Of a DNA stretch of 64,000 nt, positions 53,261-64,000 are shown one piece after another; position 1 is the stretch's first letter, and each line of letters starts with the position of its first letter. Source of the DNA: Macrostomum lignano. Lineage: Eukaryota. The DNA lies in assembly GCA_002269645.1 (NCBI GenBank), contig NIVC01002543.1, forward strand, positions 1 to 64,000, read 5' to 3'. The notes under the pieces are model-generated. The model ran no database searches. It had not been told where the DNA came from and saw nothing but the letters and a program-made list of their open reading frames with translations. A program made the translations under genes and the position numbers.

Positions 53261-53468
53261 GACAGACAGACAGACAGACAGACAGACAGACAGACAGACA
53301 GACAGACAGACAGACAGACAGACAGACAGACAGACAGACAGACAGACAGACAGACAGACAGACAGACAGACAGACAGACAGACAGACAGACAGACAGACA
53401 GACAGACAGACAGACAGACAGACAGACAGACAGACAGACAGACAGACAGACAGACAGACAGACAGACA
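53261..53468. repeat. (GACA)n microsatellite
   Basis: About 52 perfect units. Confidence 0.99.
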
Positions 53469-54282
53469 TACCGCTGTCTGTGTGTTTAGCGGGACCAGAG
53501 TTTTGTTAATGCATTAGGTGGACCACCTAGTTTCCTTATAAAACCGGTGTCTTTTGTCTCTACACGAAAAGTTAGCGTGGGTTGTCTTTCAGTTTAGCCT
53601 GCAGATTAGCCATCTCGTGGAAACTGCATGTCACTTTCAACTGGGATAGCTGGACCAGCCCGGACCTGTTTTAGGTGGACCTTCAAAAAGACACCGTTTA
53701 GGTGGACCATCATTTATTTAGCAGAGTACTGGGATTATTATCGACCCAGTACTGTTAAGCACGAGAAACAACACTAAAAGTCACGTGACAGAAGTCCCAA
53801 ATACACAATATGTAATAAAGTGAAAATAATGCATTCAGTTCTACTTTGCGCCGGACTCAAGAACCATCATCCCCATTGAAAACAAATGAATCAAATGCAA
53901 CTAATTTTTAGACCGAGAAAAATAGTTACAAGTGCAAATTAACGGCCAAGCAAAAGTTTAAATAGCAAAAAGTCATATTTGTTTTTCACTAGAATAATGA
54001 TAAACCTAAAGAAACACACTTAACGTCCCAAATATGTGCCAAAAGGCAAGTAGATTGACGACGATATAATTAATAAATACATTTGCCTAATAAATTTCAC
54101 GTATTACAATAGAACAACTTTCCACTCAATTTTTGAAAAATTAAATAAAGTTTTAACGGACGGACAAGACATGTTACGACGGATAGCGGAATCATCTCAC
54201 AGAAAGCCACAAGCTGTCGCAGTCAATATCATCATAAACAAACTTTTGCGGTTAAGCACAAAAAATCGTCTTCATTTTGCCG

Positions 54283-60869: not shown

Positions 60870-63800
60870 CTGTCTGTGTGTTTAGCGGGACCAGAGTTTT
60901 GTTAATGCATTAGGTGGACCACCTAGTTTCCTTATAAAACCGGTGTCTTCTGTCTCTACAGGAAAAGTTAGCGTGGGTTGTCTTTCAGTTTAGCCTGCAG
61001 ATTAGCCATCTCGTGGAAACTGCATGTCACTTTCAACTGGGATAGCTGGACCAGCCCGGACCTGTTTTAGGTGGACCTTCAAAAAGACACCGTTTAGGTG
61101 GACCATCATTTATTTAGCAGAGTACTGCGATTATTATCGACCCAGTACTGTTAAGCACGAGAAACAACACTAAAAGTCACGTGACAGAAGTCCCAAATAC
61201 AAAATATGTAATTAAGTGCAAATAATGCATTCAGTTCTAGTTTTCTCCGGACTCAAGAACCATCATCCCCATTAAAAACTAATGAATCAAATGCAACTGA
61301 TTTTTAGGCCGAGAAAAATAGTTACAAGTGCAAATTAACGGCCAAGCAAAAGTTTAAATAGCAAAAAGTCATATTTGTTTTTCACTAGAATAATGATAAA
61401 CCTAAAGAAACACACTTAACGTCCCAAATATGTGCCAAAAGGCAAGTAGATTGACAACGATATAATTAATACATTAATTATATTAATAATGTAATAATGT
61501 AATAATGTAATTAATAATACATTAAATACATTTGCCTAATAAATTTCACGTATTGCAATAGAACAACTTTCCACTCAATTTTTGAAAAATGAAAAAAGTT
61601 TTAACGGACGGACAAGACATGTTACGACGGATAGCGGAATCATCTCACAGAAAGCCACAAGCTGTCGCAGTCAATATCATCATAAACAAACTTTTGCGGT
61701 TGAGCACAAAAAAATCGTCTTCATTTTGCCGGAGTAGCTTGCGTCACTCGTCTGCATCAAAGCTGACTTGCCGTCTCCAGACTGGGCCTGTCAAATTTGG
61801 CATTTATACGAGAATTAAGGATTGACAGTTTACAACTGATATTCTACTGAGACTGTGAAACAGACTGGCATATTGGTGTCAGTACAGTCTGTAGGTTAGC
61901 TGGACCTCCTAAACTTGAATTCCACCTCCCACCTGTGAGGCTCTAAAACAGACGGGATCAGTTGCGTCAGTGCAGTCTGTAGGTTAGCTGGACCTCCTAA
62001 ACTTGAATTCCACCTCCTATTGGTGAGGCTCTAAAACAGACTGACTCTGTGGCGTCAGTGCAGTCTGTAGGTTAGCTGGACCACCTGGACTTGAATTCCA
62101 CCTCCCATCTGTGAGGCTCTTCAACAGACTGGCTCAGTTGCGTCAGTGCAGTCTGTAGGTTAGCTGGACCTCCTAAACTTGAATTCCACCTCCTATCTGT
62201 GAGGCTCTTCAACAGACTGGATCAGTTGCGTCAGTACAGTCTGTAGGTTAGCTGGACCTCCTAAACTTGAATTCCACATCATCTGTGAGGCTCTTTAACA
62301 GACTGACACTGTGGCGTCAGTACAGTCTGTAGGTTAGCTGGACCAGTTCAATTAGAATAGGATAAGCCAAATCTGAACACTTTTGCAGCAAGCTCACCAC
62401 AGTAGATTCAATCTCGTCCGATGACTGAACTGCGATGAGGCAACACGTCTGTCCACCGGACTGACCAGCGTCTCAGGTGCCTCAGCCGACTTCTTAGAAG
62501 TGTCCAGACGTGAGGTGTCAGCCTATAGTCGACTTAATGGCTCTTGGCCTTTAAAGTCTTGGTCGATATCTTGCTGGAGTTGCTTGCGTCACTCGTCTGC
62601 ATCAAAGCTGACTTGCCGTCTCCAGACTGGGCCTGTCAAATTTGGCATTTATACGAGAATTAAGGATTGACAGTTTACAACTGATATTCTACTGAGACTG
62701 TGAAACAGACTGGCATATTGGTGTCAGTACAGTCTGTAGGTTAGCTGGACCACCTAAACTTGAATTCCACCTCCTATCTGTGAGGCTCTTCAACAGACTG
62801 GATCAGTTGCGTCAGTGCAGTCTGTAGGTTAGCTGGACCTCCTAAAATTGAATTCCACCCCATCTGTGAGGCTCTAAAACAGACTGACTCTGTGGCGTCA
62901 GTACAGTCTGTAGGTTAGCTGGACCAGTTCAATTAGAATAGGATAAGCCAAATCTGAACACTTTTGCAGCAAGCTCACCACAGTAGATTCAATCTCGTCC
63001 GATGACTGAACTGCGATGAGGCAACACGTCTGTCCACCGGACTGACCAGCGTCTCAGGTGCCTCAGCCGACTTCTTAGAAGTGTCCAGACGTGAGGTGTC
63101 AGCCTATAGTCGACTTAATGGCTCTTGGCCTTTAAAGTCTTGGTCGATATCTTGCTGGAGTTGCTTGCGTCACTCGTCTGCATCAAAGCTGACTTGCCGT
63201 CTCCAGACTGGGCCTGTCAAATTTGGCATTTATACGAGAATTAAGGATTGACAGTTTACAACTGATATTCTACTGAGACTGTGAAACAGACTGGCATATT
63301 GGTGTCAGTACAGTCTGTAGGTTAGCTGGACCTCCTAAACTTGAATTCCACCTCCTATCTGTGAGGCTCTTCAACAGACTGGATCAGTTGCGTCAGTGCA
63401 GTCTGTAGGTTAGCTGGACCACCTGGACTTGAATTCCACCTCCCATCTGTGAGGCTCTTCAACAGACTGGCTCAGTTGCGTCAGTGCAGTCTGTAGGTTA
63501 GCTGGACCTCCTAAACTTGAATTCCACCTCCTATCTGTGAGGCTCTTCAACAGACTGGATCAGTTGCGTCAGTGCAGTCTGTAGGTTAGCTGGACCTCCT
63601 AAACTTGAATTCCACCCCATCTGTGAGGCTTTAAAACAGACTGACTCTGTGGCGTCAGTACAGTCTGTAGGTTAGCTGGATCAGTTCAATTAGAATAGGA
63701 TAAGCAAAATCTGAACACTTTTGCAGCAAGCTCACCACAGTAGATTCAATCTCGTCCGATGACTGAACTGCGATGAGGCAACACGTCTGTCCACCGGACT

Positions 63801-64000
63801 GACCAGCGTCTCAGGTGCCTCAGCCGACTTCTTAGAAGTGTCCAGACGTGAGGTGTCAGCCTATAGTCGACTTAATGGCTCTTGGCCTTTAAAGTCTTGG
63901 TCGATATCTTGCTGGAGTTGCTTGCGTCACTCGTCTGCATCAAAGCTGACTTGCCGTCTCCAGACTGGGCCTGTCAAATTTGGCATTTATACGAGAATTA
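60870..64000. mobile_element. Second head-to-tail copy of the TIR-bounded element (runs off the window)
   Basis: 60870-61830 closely matches 53474-54380 (offset 7396 bp); the composite array resumes at ~61730 with markers at 62345, 62926, 63683 (periods 581, 757). Confidence 0.85.

Follow-up and report, generated by a model that had tools for sequence, protein, structure and literature searches.

Among described mobile elements, the non-autonomous HINE and pearl elements associated with Helentrons come closest to the locus that we report here. They carry terminal or subterminal inverted repeats of 10-20 bp, and next to the subterminal one stands a second inverted repeat that is complementary to it. 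They also have an ACRG/GTCY-class tetranucleotide tract (with ACAG variants in clam relatives) and central tandem repeats in one orientation, each of which may hold a palindrome. They are non-coding, make no true duplication of their target, have T/T (AA) flanks, and sometimes occur as whole elements in tandem (PMC4067079, PMC7492417, PMC3879986). By their titles, papers of Coates et al. (2010, 2011) cited in PMC4067079 concern lepidopteran Helitron-like elements with (GAAA)n and MITE-like elements carrying hitchhiking (GTCY)n. A second group to be considered is the Cryptons, which are described as lacking terminal inverted repeats (TIRs) and whose short terminal direct repeats are thought to serve as recombination substrates (PMC3212892). 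For CryptonV families, a passage of PMC8869645 that cites Repbase Reports 2012 reports microsatellite-specific insertion.

In this study we describe a tandemly repeated, microsatellite-linked unit. We give a probability of about 40% to the reading that it is a non-autonomous, satellite-carrying unit derived from a transposon, with an organisation closest to that of HINE/DINE-1/pearl elements, seen here at the left edge of a head-to-tail array.

Anatomy of the repeat unit

The locus lies at the end of the 64 kb stretch of DNA analysed here (the window) and runs in the order (GACA)52, TACCG, an element of 7,192 bp from TIR to TIR (53474-60665), TAAC, (ACAG)48, TACCG and a second copy. The head-to-tail copies have a period of 7,396 bp; about 1.4 units of the array fall within the window, and copy 2 runs past its end. 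The window, eukaryotic and probably of animal origin, has 44.6% G+C and a CpG o/e of 0.63. The features are as follows.

53261-53468, + strand: perfect (GACA)52 tract at the left edge of the array; the flank 5' of it (...GACTGACATAAA) is unrelated to the element
53469-53473, + strand: spacer TACCG between tract and left inverted repeat; same letters at 60865-60869 in copy 2
53474-53496, + strand: left inverted repeat CTGTCTGTGTGTTTAGCGGGACC; recurs identically at 60870-60892
53474-53708, + strand: left subterminal region with five copies of TTTAGSTGGACC (53485, 53513, 53645, 53670, 53697)
53497-54281, + strand: left arm, AT-rich (37% G+C), non-coding
54282-59122, + strand: central nested satellite, ~4.85 kb, 8 higher-order units
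59123-60642, + strand: right arm, non-coding, with extra + strand boxes at 59624-59904
60304-60360, + strand: (AACAGACTGA)5.7 minisatellite directly upstream of the internal pseudo-left end
60389-60429, + strand: internal pseudo-left end (GTTTAGCTGGACC...GGTTTAGGTGGACA), complementary to the right end
60579-60665, - strand: right subterminal region with four box copies (60579, 60592, 60610, 60643)
60643-60665, + strand: right inverted repeat GGTCCAAGTAAACACACAGACAG, pairing with the left arm of the inverted repeat at 53474-53496
60666-60864, + strand: TAAC followed by (ACAG)n; 48 perfect GACA units at 60673-60864
60865-64000, + strand: copy 2, with TACCG, left inverted repeat (60870-60892), left arm and central array from 61731

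The inverted repeats, the boxes and the tracts are genuine and stand far above chance. The 23-nt inverted arms are complementary at 20 of 23 positions, perfectly so over the outer 15, and the outer 15-mer occurs three times where 0.29 occurrences are expected. When the right end is reverse-complemented, it can be aligned with the left end over ~65 nt. For TAGSTGGACC we counted 53 exact matches (0.19 expected), and 52 of these lie within 53.5-64 kb; the lone match outside, at 45233, has no element context. Each end bears 4-5 copies of TTTAGSTGGACC, inverted between the ends, and 54 boxes on the + strand stand against 4 on the - strand. At the left end, the hairpin partner of the inverted repeat is the end of the microsatellite itself: ACAGACAG, an 8-nt loop and CTGTCTGT, then GTGTTTAGCGGGACC, would form a hairpin between the tract end and the first 8 nt of the left repeat (-9.5 kcal/mol, z -3.3). 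The junction of right repeat, tract and left repeat reads as an inverted-repeat pair around a spacer (z -5.2).

A module made up of an ACAGAC repeat, a short loop, CWGTCTGT and TTAGSTGGACC is present in 43 of 43 subrepeats of the satellite and in the internal pseudo-end. The subrepeat is 88 bp long and reads ACAGACTG, 17 nt, CAGTCTGT, AG, GTTAGCTGGACC; every one of the 43 shows ACAGACTG, the 17-nt loop and CAGTCTGT, then AGGTTAGCTGGACC, which is the architecture of the left end. Covariation in the subrepeat hairpin is uninformative, the arms being invariant in 41 of the 43 copies and both variants disrupting the pairing. Copy 1 contains 29 subrepeats and 8 higher-order units, all on the + strand. 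The higher-order units consist of an A block, 2-5 copies of the subrepeat and a B block, and their starts lie 473-757 bp apart. The pseudo-end region (60304-60429) gives alignments of z 6.9 with the module of tract and left repeat and of z 5.2 with the subrepeat, and the pseudo-left end forms with the right end a foldback of 275-360 bp (60389-60665, z -4.4) that resembles a miniature of the element.

Leaving aside frames that read through (GACA)n, the longest ORF of the element has 123 aa. None of 10 element ORFs (56-123 aa) reached even E 0.07 against Pfam, with neither a transposase nor a recombinase detected; no homologues of these spurious ORFs were found, and the larger ORFs of the window gave no Rep/helicase match. 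These data bear out the descriptive core of an earlier sequence-only reading of the window, which had reported an alternation of GACA tract and element of ~7.2 kb, inverted-repeat termini complementary to the tract (in the left arm, the first 8 nt pair with the end of the tract), dense TAG(C/G)TGGACC motifs and no transposase. The window also contains a Penelope-like RT, whose best matches are ~50% identical, and an Ig-like ORF for which no matches were found.

Tracts, boundaries and modes of insertion

In the whole 64 kb there are only two runs of at least five GACA units, 53261-53468 and 60673-60864. They are in direct, not inverted, orientation relative to each other, and they do not abut the inverted repeats: TACCG (left, in both copies) and TAAC (right) lie in between. 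Per unit there is a single tetranucleotide tract, (ACAG)n or, on the complementary strand, (GTCT)n. The sole array boundary visible in the window is the left one, AAA|(GACA)n, or (GTCT)n|TTT on the other strand. A degenerate right end 5' of the first tract was sought by aligning this flank with the right end; apart from the microsatellite, no significant similarity emerged. The array begins with a tract that no right end precedes, which puts the boundary of the unit at the tract; and since TACCG is the same at both copies, the duplicated unit extends beyond its inverted repeats, which are subterminal to it. As read from the sequence, TAAACACACAGACAG|TAACACAGACAG... repeats part of the right terminus in direct orientation and enters the tract in phase.

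Around 53474-60665 (left flank ...ACATACCG, right flank TAACACAG...) we found no target-site duplication of any length: over lengths of 2 to 10 nt, ...GACATACCG on the left and TAACACAGA... on the right have no direct repeat in common. This speaks against ordinary cut-and-paste insertion into a microsatellite. It bears directly on the possibility that the unit is a non-autonomous DDE cut-and-paste transposon, with 23-bp TIRs and subterminal transposase-binding repeats, which inserted into a pre-existing (GACA)n and was duplicated by unequal exchange between the halves of the split tract. Such a transposon would account for the TIRs together with several inverted subterminal 12-nt boxes, an anatomy that is classic for the ends of hAT, P, CACTA and Mutator-type elements. 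Multiple boxes at each end, here 4-5, and ends that can be aligned over ~65 nt are commoner among cut-and-paste subterminal repeats bound by transposase. The same orientation of the tracts on both sides is also what a split target predicts. A THAP/P-transposase-like fragment lies 5 kb upstream of the element and would suit this explanation as well, although we found nothing that ties it to the element, and nothing in the THAP region resembles the element. Yet the duplication is missing despite arms that have diverged by only ~2%, no transposase was found in the element, non-microsatellite spacers (TACCG and TAAC) separate tract and TIRs, and the module of ACAGAC repeat and box is intrinsic to the element. 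Hence we consider a cut-and-paste origin unlikely. Tandem-repeat-containing MITEs and Foldback-like elements likewise combine TIRs and multiple subterminal boxes with internal arrays that stem from end sequences; the element described here differs from them in having no target-site duplication and in its strong asymmetry (54 against 4 boxes).

The sequence-only reading had proposed that the termini mimic a pre-existing microsatellite target, and had named Dada elements as an example of microsatellite targeting. The first proposal sits badly with the absent duplication, with a non-microsatellite TACCG that is the same at both copies and with the intrinsic module. As to the second, the Dada families described in PMC8869645 insert into small RNA genes (tRNA, snRNA, 5S) with duplications of 6-7 bp, and the DNA transposons for which that paper reports microsatellite specificity are CryptonV elements. 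By this definition the element is not a Dada member, having no 6-7 bp duplication, and an Rfam search of the whole window found no RNA genes.

It might also be possible that the unit is a Crypton-like non-autonomous element. A circle carrying the right repeat, an ACAG core and the left repeat as its recombination site would then cross with genomic (ACAG)n, leaving direct microsatellite on both sides, and integration beside resident copies would build tandem arrays. The junction of right repeat, tract and left repeat does resemble a recombinase site, ACAG direct repeats lie at both boundaries with no target-site duplication, and the microsatellite specificity reported for CryptonV in the passage of PMC8869645 cited above would fit. 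Cnidarian CryptonV is also similar in being a microsatellite-flanked DNA transposon for which no duplication is expected and whose circular intermediate could give tandem copies. Cryptons, however, have a recombinase gene and, by their description, no TIRs, whereas the element here has clear inverted ends and no recombinase ORF was found in it; moreover, its repeats are set off from the tract by TACCG and TAAC. Taken together, this makes a Crypton-like origin very improbable.

A related idea receives a slim chance from us, namely that the locus represents non-autonomous mobile DNA of a kind not described before, in which two inverted arms that bind protein enclose a tetranucleotide microsatellite serving as the attachment site. 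Strand exchange within the ACAG repeats would be the work of a recombinase or HUH nuclease, and the element would integrate into (GACA)n genome-wide, building microsatellite-linked tandem arrays and seeding microsatellites and satellites.

Under our preferred reading of a transposon-derived unit close to HINE/DINE-1/pearl, (GACA)n looks like part of the repeat unit and an outgrowth of the element's own end, not a mimicked pre-existing target, because the module recurs inside the element and because the right terminus is partly repeated at the start of the tract. The microsatellite would thus be an expansion of the element's own ACAGACAG, which may form a small hairpin with CTGTCTGT, the outer part of the left repeat, beside a TTAGSTGGACC box. 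The 88-bp subrepeats and the higher-order units would have come from internal amplification of the same module of hairpin and box. On the minus strand, the layout of the unit would then be Helentron-like: a 5' inverted repeat a few nt from the start of the unit, followed by central repeats in one direction, a 3' inverted repeat, and a hairpin and tail inflated by (GTCT)52, with TTT in the flank and no target-site duplication.

Two copies and their amplification

The two copies are similar, and not identical. Their left arms differ by 17 substitutions over 812 aligned nt (97.9% identity), with a further 55 gapped columns, mostly due to a single AT-rich insertion in copy 2. Nor do the internal arrays have the same number of units; unit starts in the array of copy 2 are spaced 845, 581 and 757 bp apart up to the cut at the window end. 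Array units diverge by 0-1% in most pairs within a copy (2% for one outlier unit) and by 1.2-2.7% between copies, and three sites among the array units are fixed in a copy-specific manner. Since the copies are not identical and their arrays differ in unit number, a trivial duplication by the assembly is unlikely. Both copies would have been made on the spot, either through rolling-circle read-through or when tracts underwent unequal exchange, and each central array would afterwards have been homogenised or expanded on its own. The sequence-only reading had named the same two routes, and both are still viable locally.

Local amplification could also be the whole story. In this explanation, unequal exchange or replication slippage at (GACA)n copied 7.4 kb of DNA, perhaps the relic of an old transposon, in place as a macrosatellite or segmental duplication; the unit would not, or would no longer, be mobile, and its inverted repeats would be a local palindrome around the tract. 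The head-to-tail order with identical TACCG junctions in both copies agrees with this, perfect tracts of ~200 bp suit unequal exchange, and satellite-type homogenisation is visible within each copy. A separate segment of 6.6-8.4 kb, which has no such inverted repeats, is present three times in direct order within the window (88-95% identity), and multi-kb tandem duplication is therefore common in the region.

In addition, this is the single locus known in the window and in metagenome, prokaryote-genome and viral contigs. A sensitive blastn search of window positions 1-53260 with the element gave nothing, and neither the 22-mer subrepeat core nor the inverted-repeat pattern had a match in those contig collections. 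A box-pair pattern picked up 29 metagenome loci; on inspection these were unrelated, being bacterial REP-like palindromes (GGTCCACCTAAAGGTGGAC) and Gly/Pro-coding repeats. In a full-text literature search the end and box sequences gave only chance primer matches. What is hard to obtain by local duplication without a transposon-type origin are the 4-5 mirror-oriented boxes, the ~65-nt alignable ends and the nested miniature. Against it also stand the coincidence of unit boundary and tract and the lack of a right end before the first tract, and it accounts for the amplification of the unit, not for its origin. We therefore regard local duplication alone as rather doubtful, if far from negligible.

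For our preferred transposon-derived unit, mobility is our inference. If the unit is dispersed and mobile, one locus would show how an end module of hairpin and box spawns both a long perfect microsatellite and an 88-bp satellite with higher-order structure, with whole elements forming tandem arrays; the link between transposon, microsatellite and satellite would be tighter than in the short HINE and pearl elements so far described. Confinement to this locus would make it an ordinary, though elaborate, case of local tandem duplication, in a region prone to duplications.

Comparison with Helentron-associated elements

Membership among HINE/DINE-1/pearl elements is unproven because the microsatellite lies outside the inverted-repeat pair, with the right end of one copy before it and the left end of the next after it, whereas in canonical HINE and pearl elements the tract is internal, between a flanking module and the central repeats. 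The array is circularly ambiguous, and any reading of it violates at least one canonical HINE feature. Candidates for the 3' palindrome of HINEs (8-35 bp from the terminus) are the hairpin of tract and repeat and a compound hairpin at ~60519-60567, the 3' terminus being not definable at a single tandem locus. Likewise, the T|T insertion preference can be compared only at the sole visible boundary, AAA|GACA (GTCT|TTT in the opposite strand), the other one lying beyond the window. Neither the published Helentron subterminal repeats nor the oyster HINE supplement showed similarity to the element ends.

Differences in scale add to this. The tract of DTC84 is reported with 2-13 units, against ~50 perfect units here; HINEs have a single subterminal repeat, against 4-5 box copies per end; and they have up to ~6 simple repeats, against 7.2 kb with 8 units in a two-level array (88-bp repeats within ~660-bp ones), so that the element is far larger than the HINEs described.

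On the other hand, the likenesses are numerous. HINEs have subterminal inverted repeats of 11-15 bp, and here the 23-nt arms hold 15 perfect positions with the tails TACCG and TAAC, 4-5 nt long and not complementary to each other, outside them. A short complementary repeat stands beside the subterminal one, in the form of the ACAGACAG/CTGTCTGT hairpin, and the central tandem repeats are all in one orientation. The element is non-coding, lacks a target-site duplication, has A/T at its one visible boundary and occurs as tandem whole units. The elements of Coates et al., to judge by the titles cited in PMC4067079, are likewise rolling-circle-type or MITE-like and physically coupled to tetranucleotide microsatellites. 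The interpretation offered by the sequence-only reading is partly supported as a whole, and its comparison with DINE-1/HINE has held up: with inverted repeats, a (GTCY)-class tract and a one-orientation central array, these elements provide the best analogy available, and an HUH/rolling-circle mechanism might have operated here too.

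Layout and internal structure of the unit

The sequence-only reading described an alternation of GACA tract and element, with terminal inverted repeats and a dense short motif. We could confirm this layout, which is as follows:

Upstream of first tract, + strand: flank (...GACTGACATAAA), unrelated to the element
53261-53468, + strand: perfect (GACA)52
Between first tract and left inverted repeat, + strand: TACCG spacer
53474-53496, + strand: left inverted repeat CTGTCTGTGTGTTTAGCGGGACC
Between left inverted repeat and tandem array, + strand: left arm, AT-rich, 0.8 kb
54282-59122, + strand: tandem array, 4.85 kb
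Between array and right inverted repeat, + strand: right arm, 1.5 kb
60643-60665, + strand: right inverted repeat GGTCCAAGTAAACACACAGACAG
After right inverted repeat, before second tract, + strand: TAAC spacer
60673-60864, + strand: (ACAG)n with 48 perfect GACA units
Between second tract and copy-2 left repeat, + strand: TACCG spacer, second occurrence
60870-60892, + strand: left inverted repeat of copy 2, same as in copy 1; copy 2 then runs past the window end

Counted from one inverted repeat to the other, the element is 7,192 bp long, and it recurs with a period of 7,396 bp. Each unit carries one tract, both tracts lie in direct orientation, and no other run of five or more GACA units exists in the 64 kb. 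We counted three occurrences of the inverted-repeat 15-mer (0.29 expected) and 53 of TAGSTGGACC (0.19 expected), all but one of the latter (52/53) within 53261-64000.

Once reverse-complemented, the right end can be aligned to the left end over ∼65 nt. Allowing up to two mismatches, we found the 12-nt box TTTAGSTGGACC in five + strand copies in the first 235 bp, in four - strand copies in the last 87 bp and in six further + strand copies in the right arm, a density of ∼6 per kb in the arms versus 0.21 per kb in the remaining window. The central array is nested: in each of eight higher-order units, whose starts are 473-757 bp apart, 2-5 copies of an 88-bp subrepeat stand between an A block and a B block. 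All subrepeats (43/43 over both copies) read ACAGACTG, a 17-nt loop, CAGTCTGT and then AGGTTAGCTGGACC. The end of the tract and the left terminus share this architecture (ACAGACAG, 8-nt loop, CTGTCTGT, then GTGTTTAGCGGGACC), with a predicted hairpin of -9.5 kcal/mol (z -3.3). At 60304-60429 lies an internal pseudo-end, in which GTTTAGCTGGACC...GGTTTAGGTGGACA comes after a (AACAGACTGA)5.7 minisatellite. It can be aligned both to the module of tract and left repeat (z 6.9) and, with z 5.2, to the subrepeat; paired with the right end, it makes up a foldback of 275-360 bp resembling a miniature element.

As in the sequence-only reading, no transposase was found: none of 10 tested element ORFs had a Pfam match, even at E ≤0.07, and the longest ORF outside the tracts has 123 aa. 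Rfam matches were likewise absent. About 5 kb upstream, the C-terminal motif AVPSIF of a fragment at 46990-48003 (-) is THAP-like, and the fragment weakly matches the HTH domain of the P-element transposase, at an E of 3e-4 that falls short of the Pfam cut-off; we found no sequence link between this fragment and the element.

The microsatellite as target or part of the unit

The sequence-only reading described termini that mimic the microsatellite. A rival explanation along this line is a DDE element inserted into a pre-existing microsatellite. The end anatomy suits such an insertion, but target-site duplications around the inverted repeats were found at no length (left flank ...ACATACCG, right flank TAACACAG...), with arms just ∼2% diverged. 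To our knowledge, all DDE cut-and-paste superfamilies generate a duplication, hence its absence weighs against them; it is compatible with a rolling-circle (HUH) or a tyrosine-recombinase element, and also with a unit that never transposed. Three further features of the sequence argue against a mimicked target. The non-microsatellite spacer TACCG is the same at both copies; it is therefore part of what is repeated, and the inverted repeats are subterminal to the unit. The module of ACAGAC-type repeat, complementary CWGTCTGT and box recurs within the element, in 43 subrepeats and in the pseudo-end, which has a 10-bp minisatellite to itself, and these internal occurrences cannot be targets. Moreover, the first bases of the tract repeat part of the right terminus directly and in phase (TAAACACACAGACAG|TAACACAGACAG ACAG...). 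We infer that the tract might be an outgrowth of the element's own ACAGACAG segment, from which it would have grown by slippage. A family truly targeting ACAGAC-rich repeats would likewise leave such repeats at its ends.

In another rival, Crypton-like model, a tyrosine recombinase would cross over where the right repeat, the ACAG core and the left repeat are joined. This would neatly yield direct microsatellites at both sides as well as tandem arrays, and CryptonV families are microsatellite-specific according to a second-hand statement (PMC8869645). However, Cryptons are without TIRs by their published description (PMC3212892), and no recombinase was found in the element.

Duplication of the unit and its neighbourhood

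Between the two copies, the left arms are 97.9% identical (17 substitutions over 812 aligned nt) and show 55 gapped columns, mainly a single insertion in copy 2. This (ATAATTA)n-like AT-rich stretch (61462-61525), missing in copy 1, is the chief arm length difference. Higher-order units inside one copy are mostly 0-1% different, with one outlier of up to 2%; across copies the difference is 1.2-2.7%, three sites are fixed differently in the two copies, and the unit spacing of copy 2 (845, 581, 757 bp) departs from that of copy 1. The duplication is therefore real and not very recent, and each array was homogenised or expanded in place afterwards.

The strongest rival explanation is a local macrosatellite, a 7.4-kb unit tandemly duplicated in place. 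It accounts well for the amplification: perfect tracts of ∼200 bp are obvious substrates for unequal exchange, and another segment of 6.6-8.4 kb stands three times in the window in direct order with 88-95% identity (8160-14790, 18635-26465, 32507-40941), so this neighbourhood commonly shows multi-kb tandem duplication that does not depend on the inverted-repeat element. The mirror-image box clusters and the nested miniature element are left unexplained by it.

Each copy of the tripled segment carries (GTGCAAATAG)n, 29-bp and 42/43-bp minisatellites and long, Ig-domain-like-looking ORFs with no Pfam or database match. The neighbourhood upstream of the first tract is unusually rich in tandem repeats, with three unrelated satellite-like arrays directly before it at 48756-49095 (39 bp), 49948-50638 (32/224 bp) and 50973-52463 (48-53/101 bp). 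Elsewhere, two adjoining ORFs at 30270-31326 (-) look like a Penelope-like retroelement (a YVDD-bearing RT followed by a GIY-YIG-like tail). The top database identity of this RT is only ∼50%, hence the protein collections are without a close relative of this genome. The 3' tail that adjoins (GT)37 at 29083-29740 belongs to a non-LTR retrotransposon ORF, and zf-RVT is matched weakly there.

Comparison with known elements

Pattern scans of metagenome, prokaryote-genome and viral contigs and ORF-based look-ups gave empty or irrelevant matches. Box-sharing metagenome loci (L001, L005, L007, L011, L012, L017, L018, L020, L021, L023, L024, L028) were rejected as relatives: they are high-GC (63-66%) contigs with a tandem palindromic GGTCCACCTAAAGGTGGAC every 27-39 bp, look like bacterial REP-type repeats, and their 11-nt box looks like a chance resemblance. 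Dada, offered earlier as an example of microsatellite targeting, was inaccurate: the Dada families described in PMC8869645 insert in small RNA genes with 6-7 bp duplications.

The earlier comparison with DINE-1/HINE does name the closest published anatomy. The Helentron-linked non-autonomous HINE/DINE-1/pearl/DTC84 elements are non-coding and have 10-20 bp terminal or subterminal inverted repeats with an adjacent complementary inverted repeat, a GTCY/ACRG-class tetranucleotide tract (ACAG in clam relatives), central tandem repeats in a single orientation, each possibly with a palindrome, a 3' palindrome and T/T (AA) flanks without true duplication; whole elements occasionally form tandem arrays (PMC4067079; PMC7492417; PMC3879986). 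Read on the minus strand, our unit shows most of these features. Its 5' inverted repeat stands a few nt from the start and leads into the 1.5-kb arm, which is followed by the array, the 0.8-kb arm and the 3' inverted repeat; beyond this come a hairpin, a tail of (GTCT)52 and TTT as flank. The unit deviates from the canonical form in four respects. The tract lies outside the inverted-repeat pair, and the canonical order is regained in the circularly ambiguous array only if the tract strand is inverted and the first unit truncated; there are 4-5 boxes per end instead of a single subterminal repeat; in size the element exceeds described HINEs several-fold; and its ends are unrelated to published subterminal repeat sequences of Helentron-type elements. 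By analogy, the element would work like the HINE/DINE-1/pearl kind and is probably akin to it, and we do not assign it as a member. Judged from its architecture alone, it appears to be a variant among non-autonomous elements carrying tandem repeats and microsatellites, unusual in where the tract sits, in tract size and in its two-level internal satellite.
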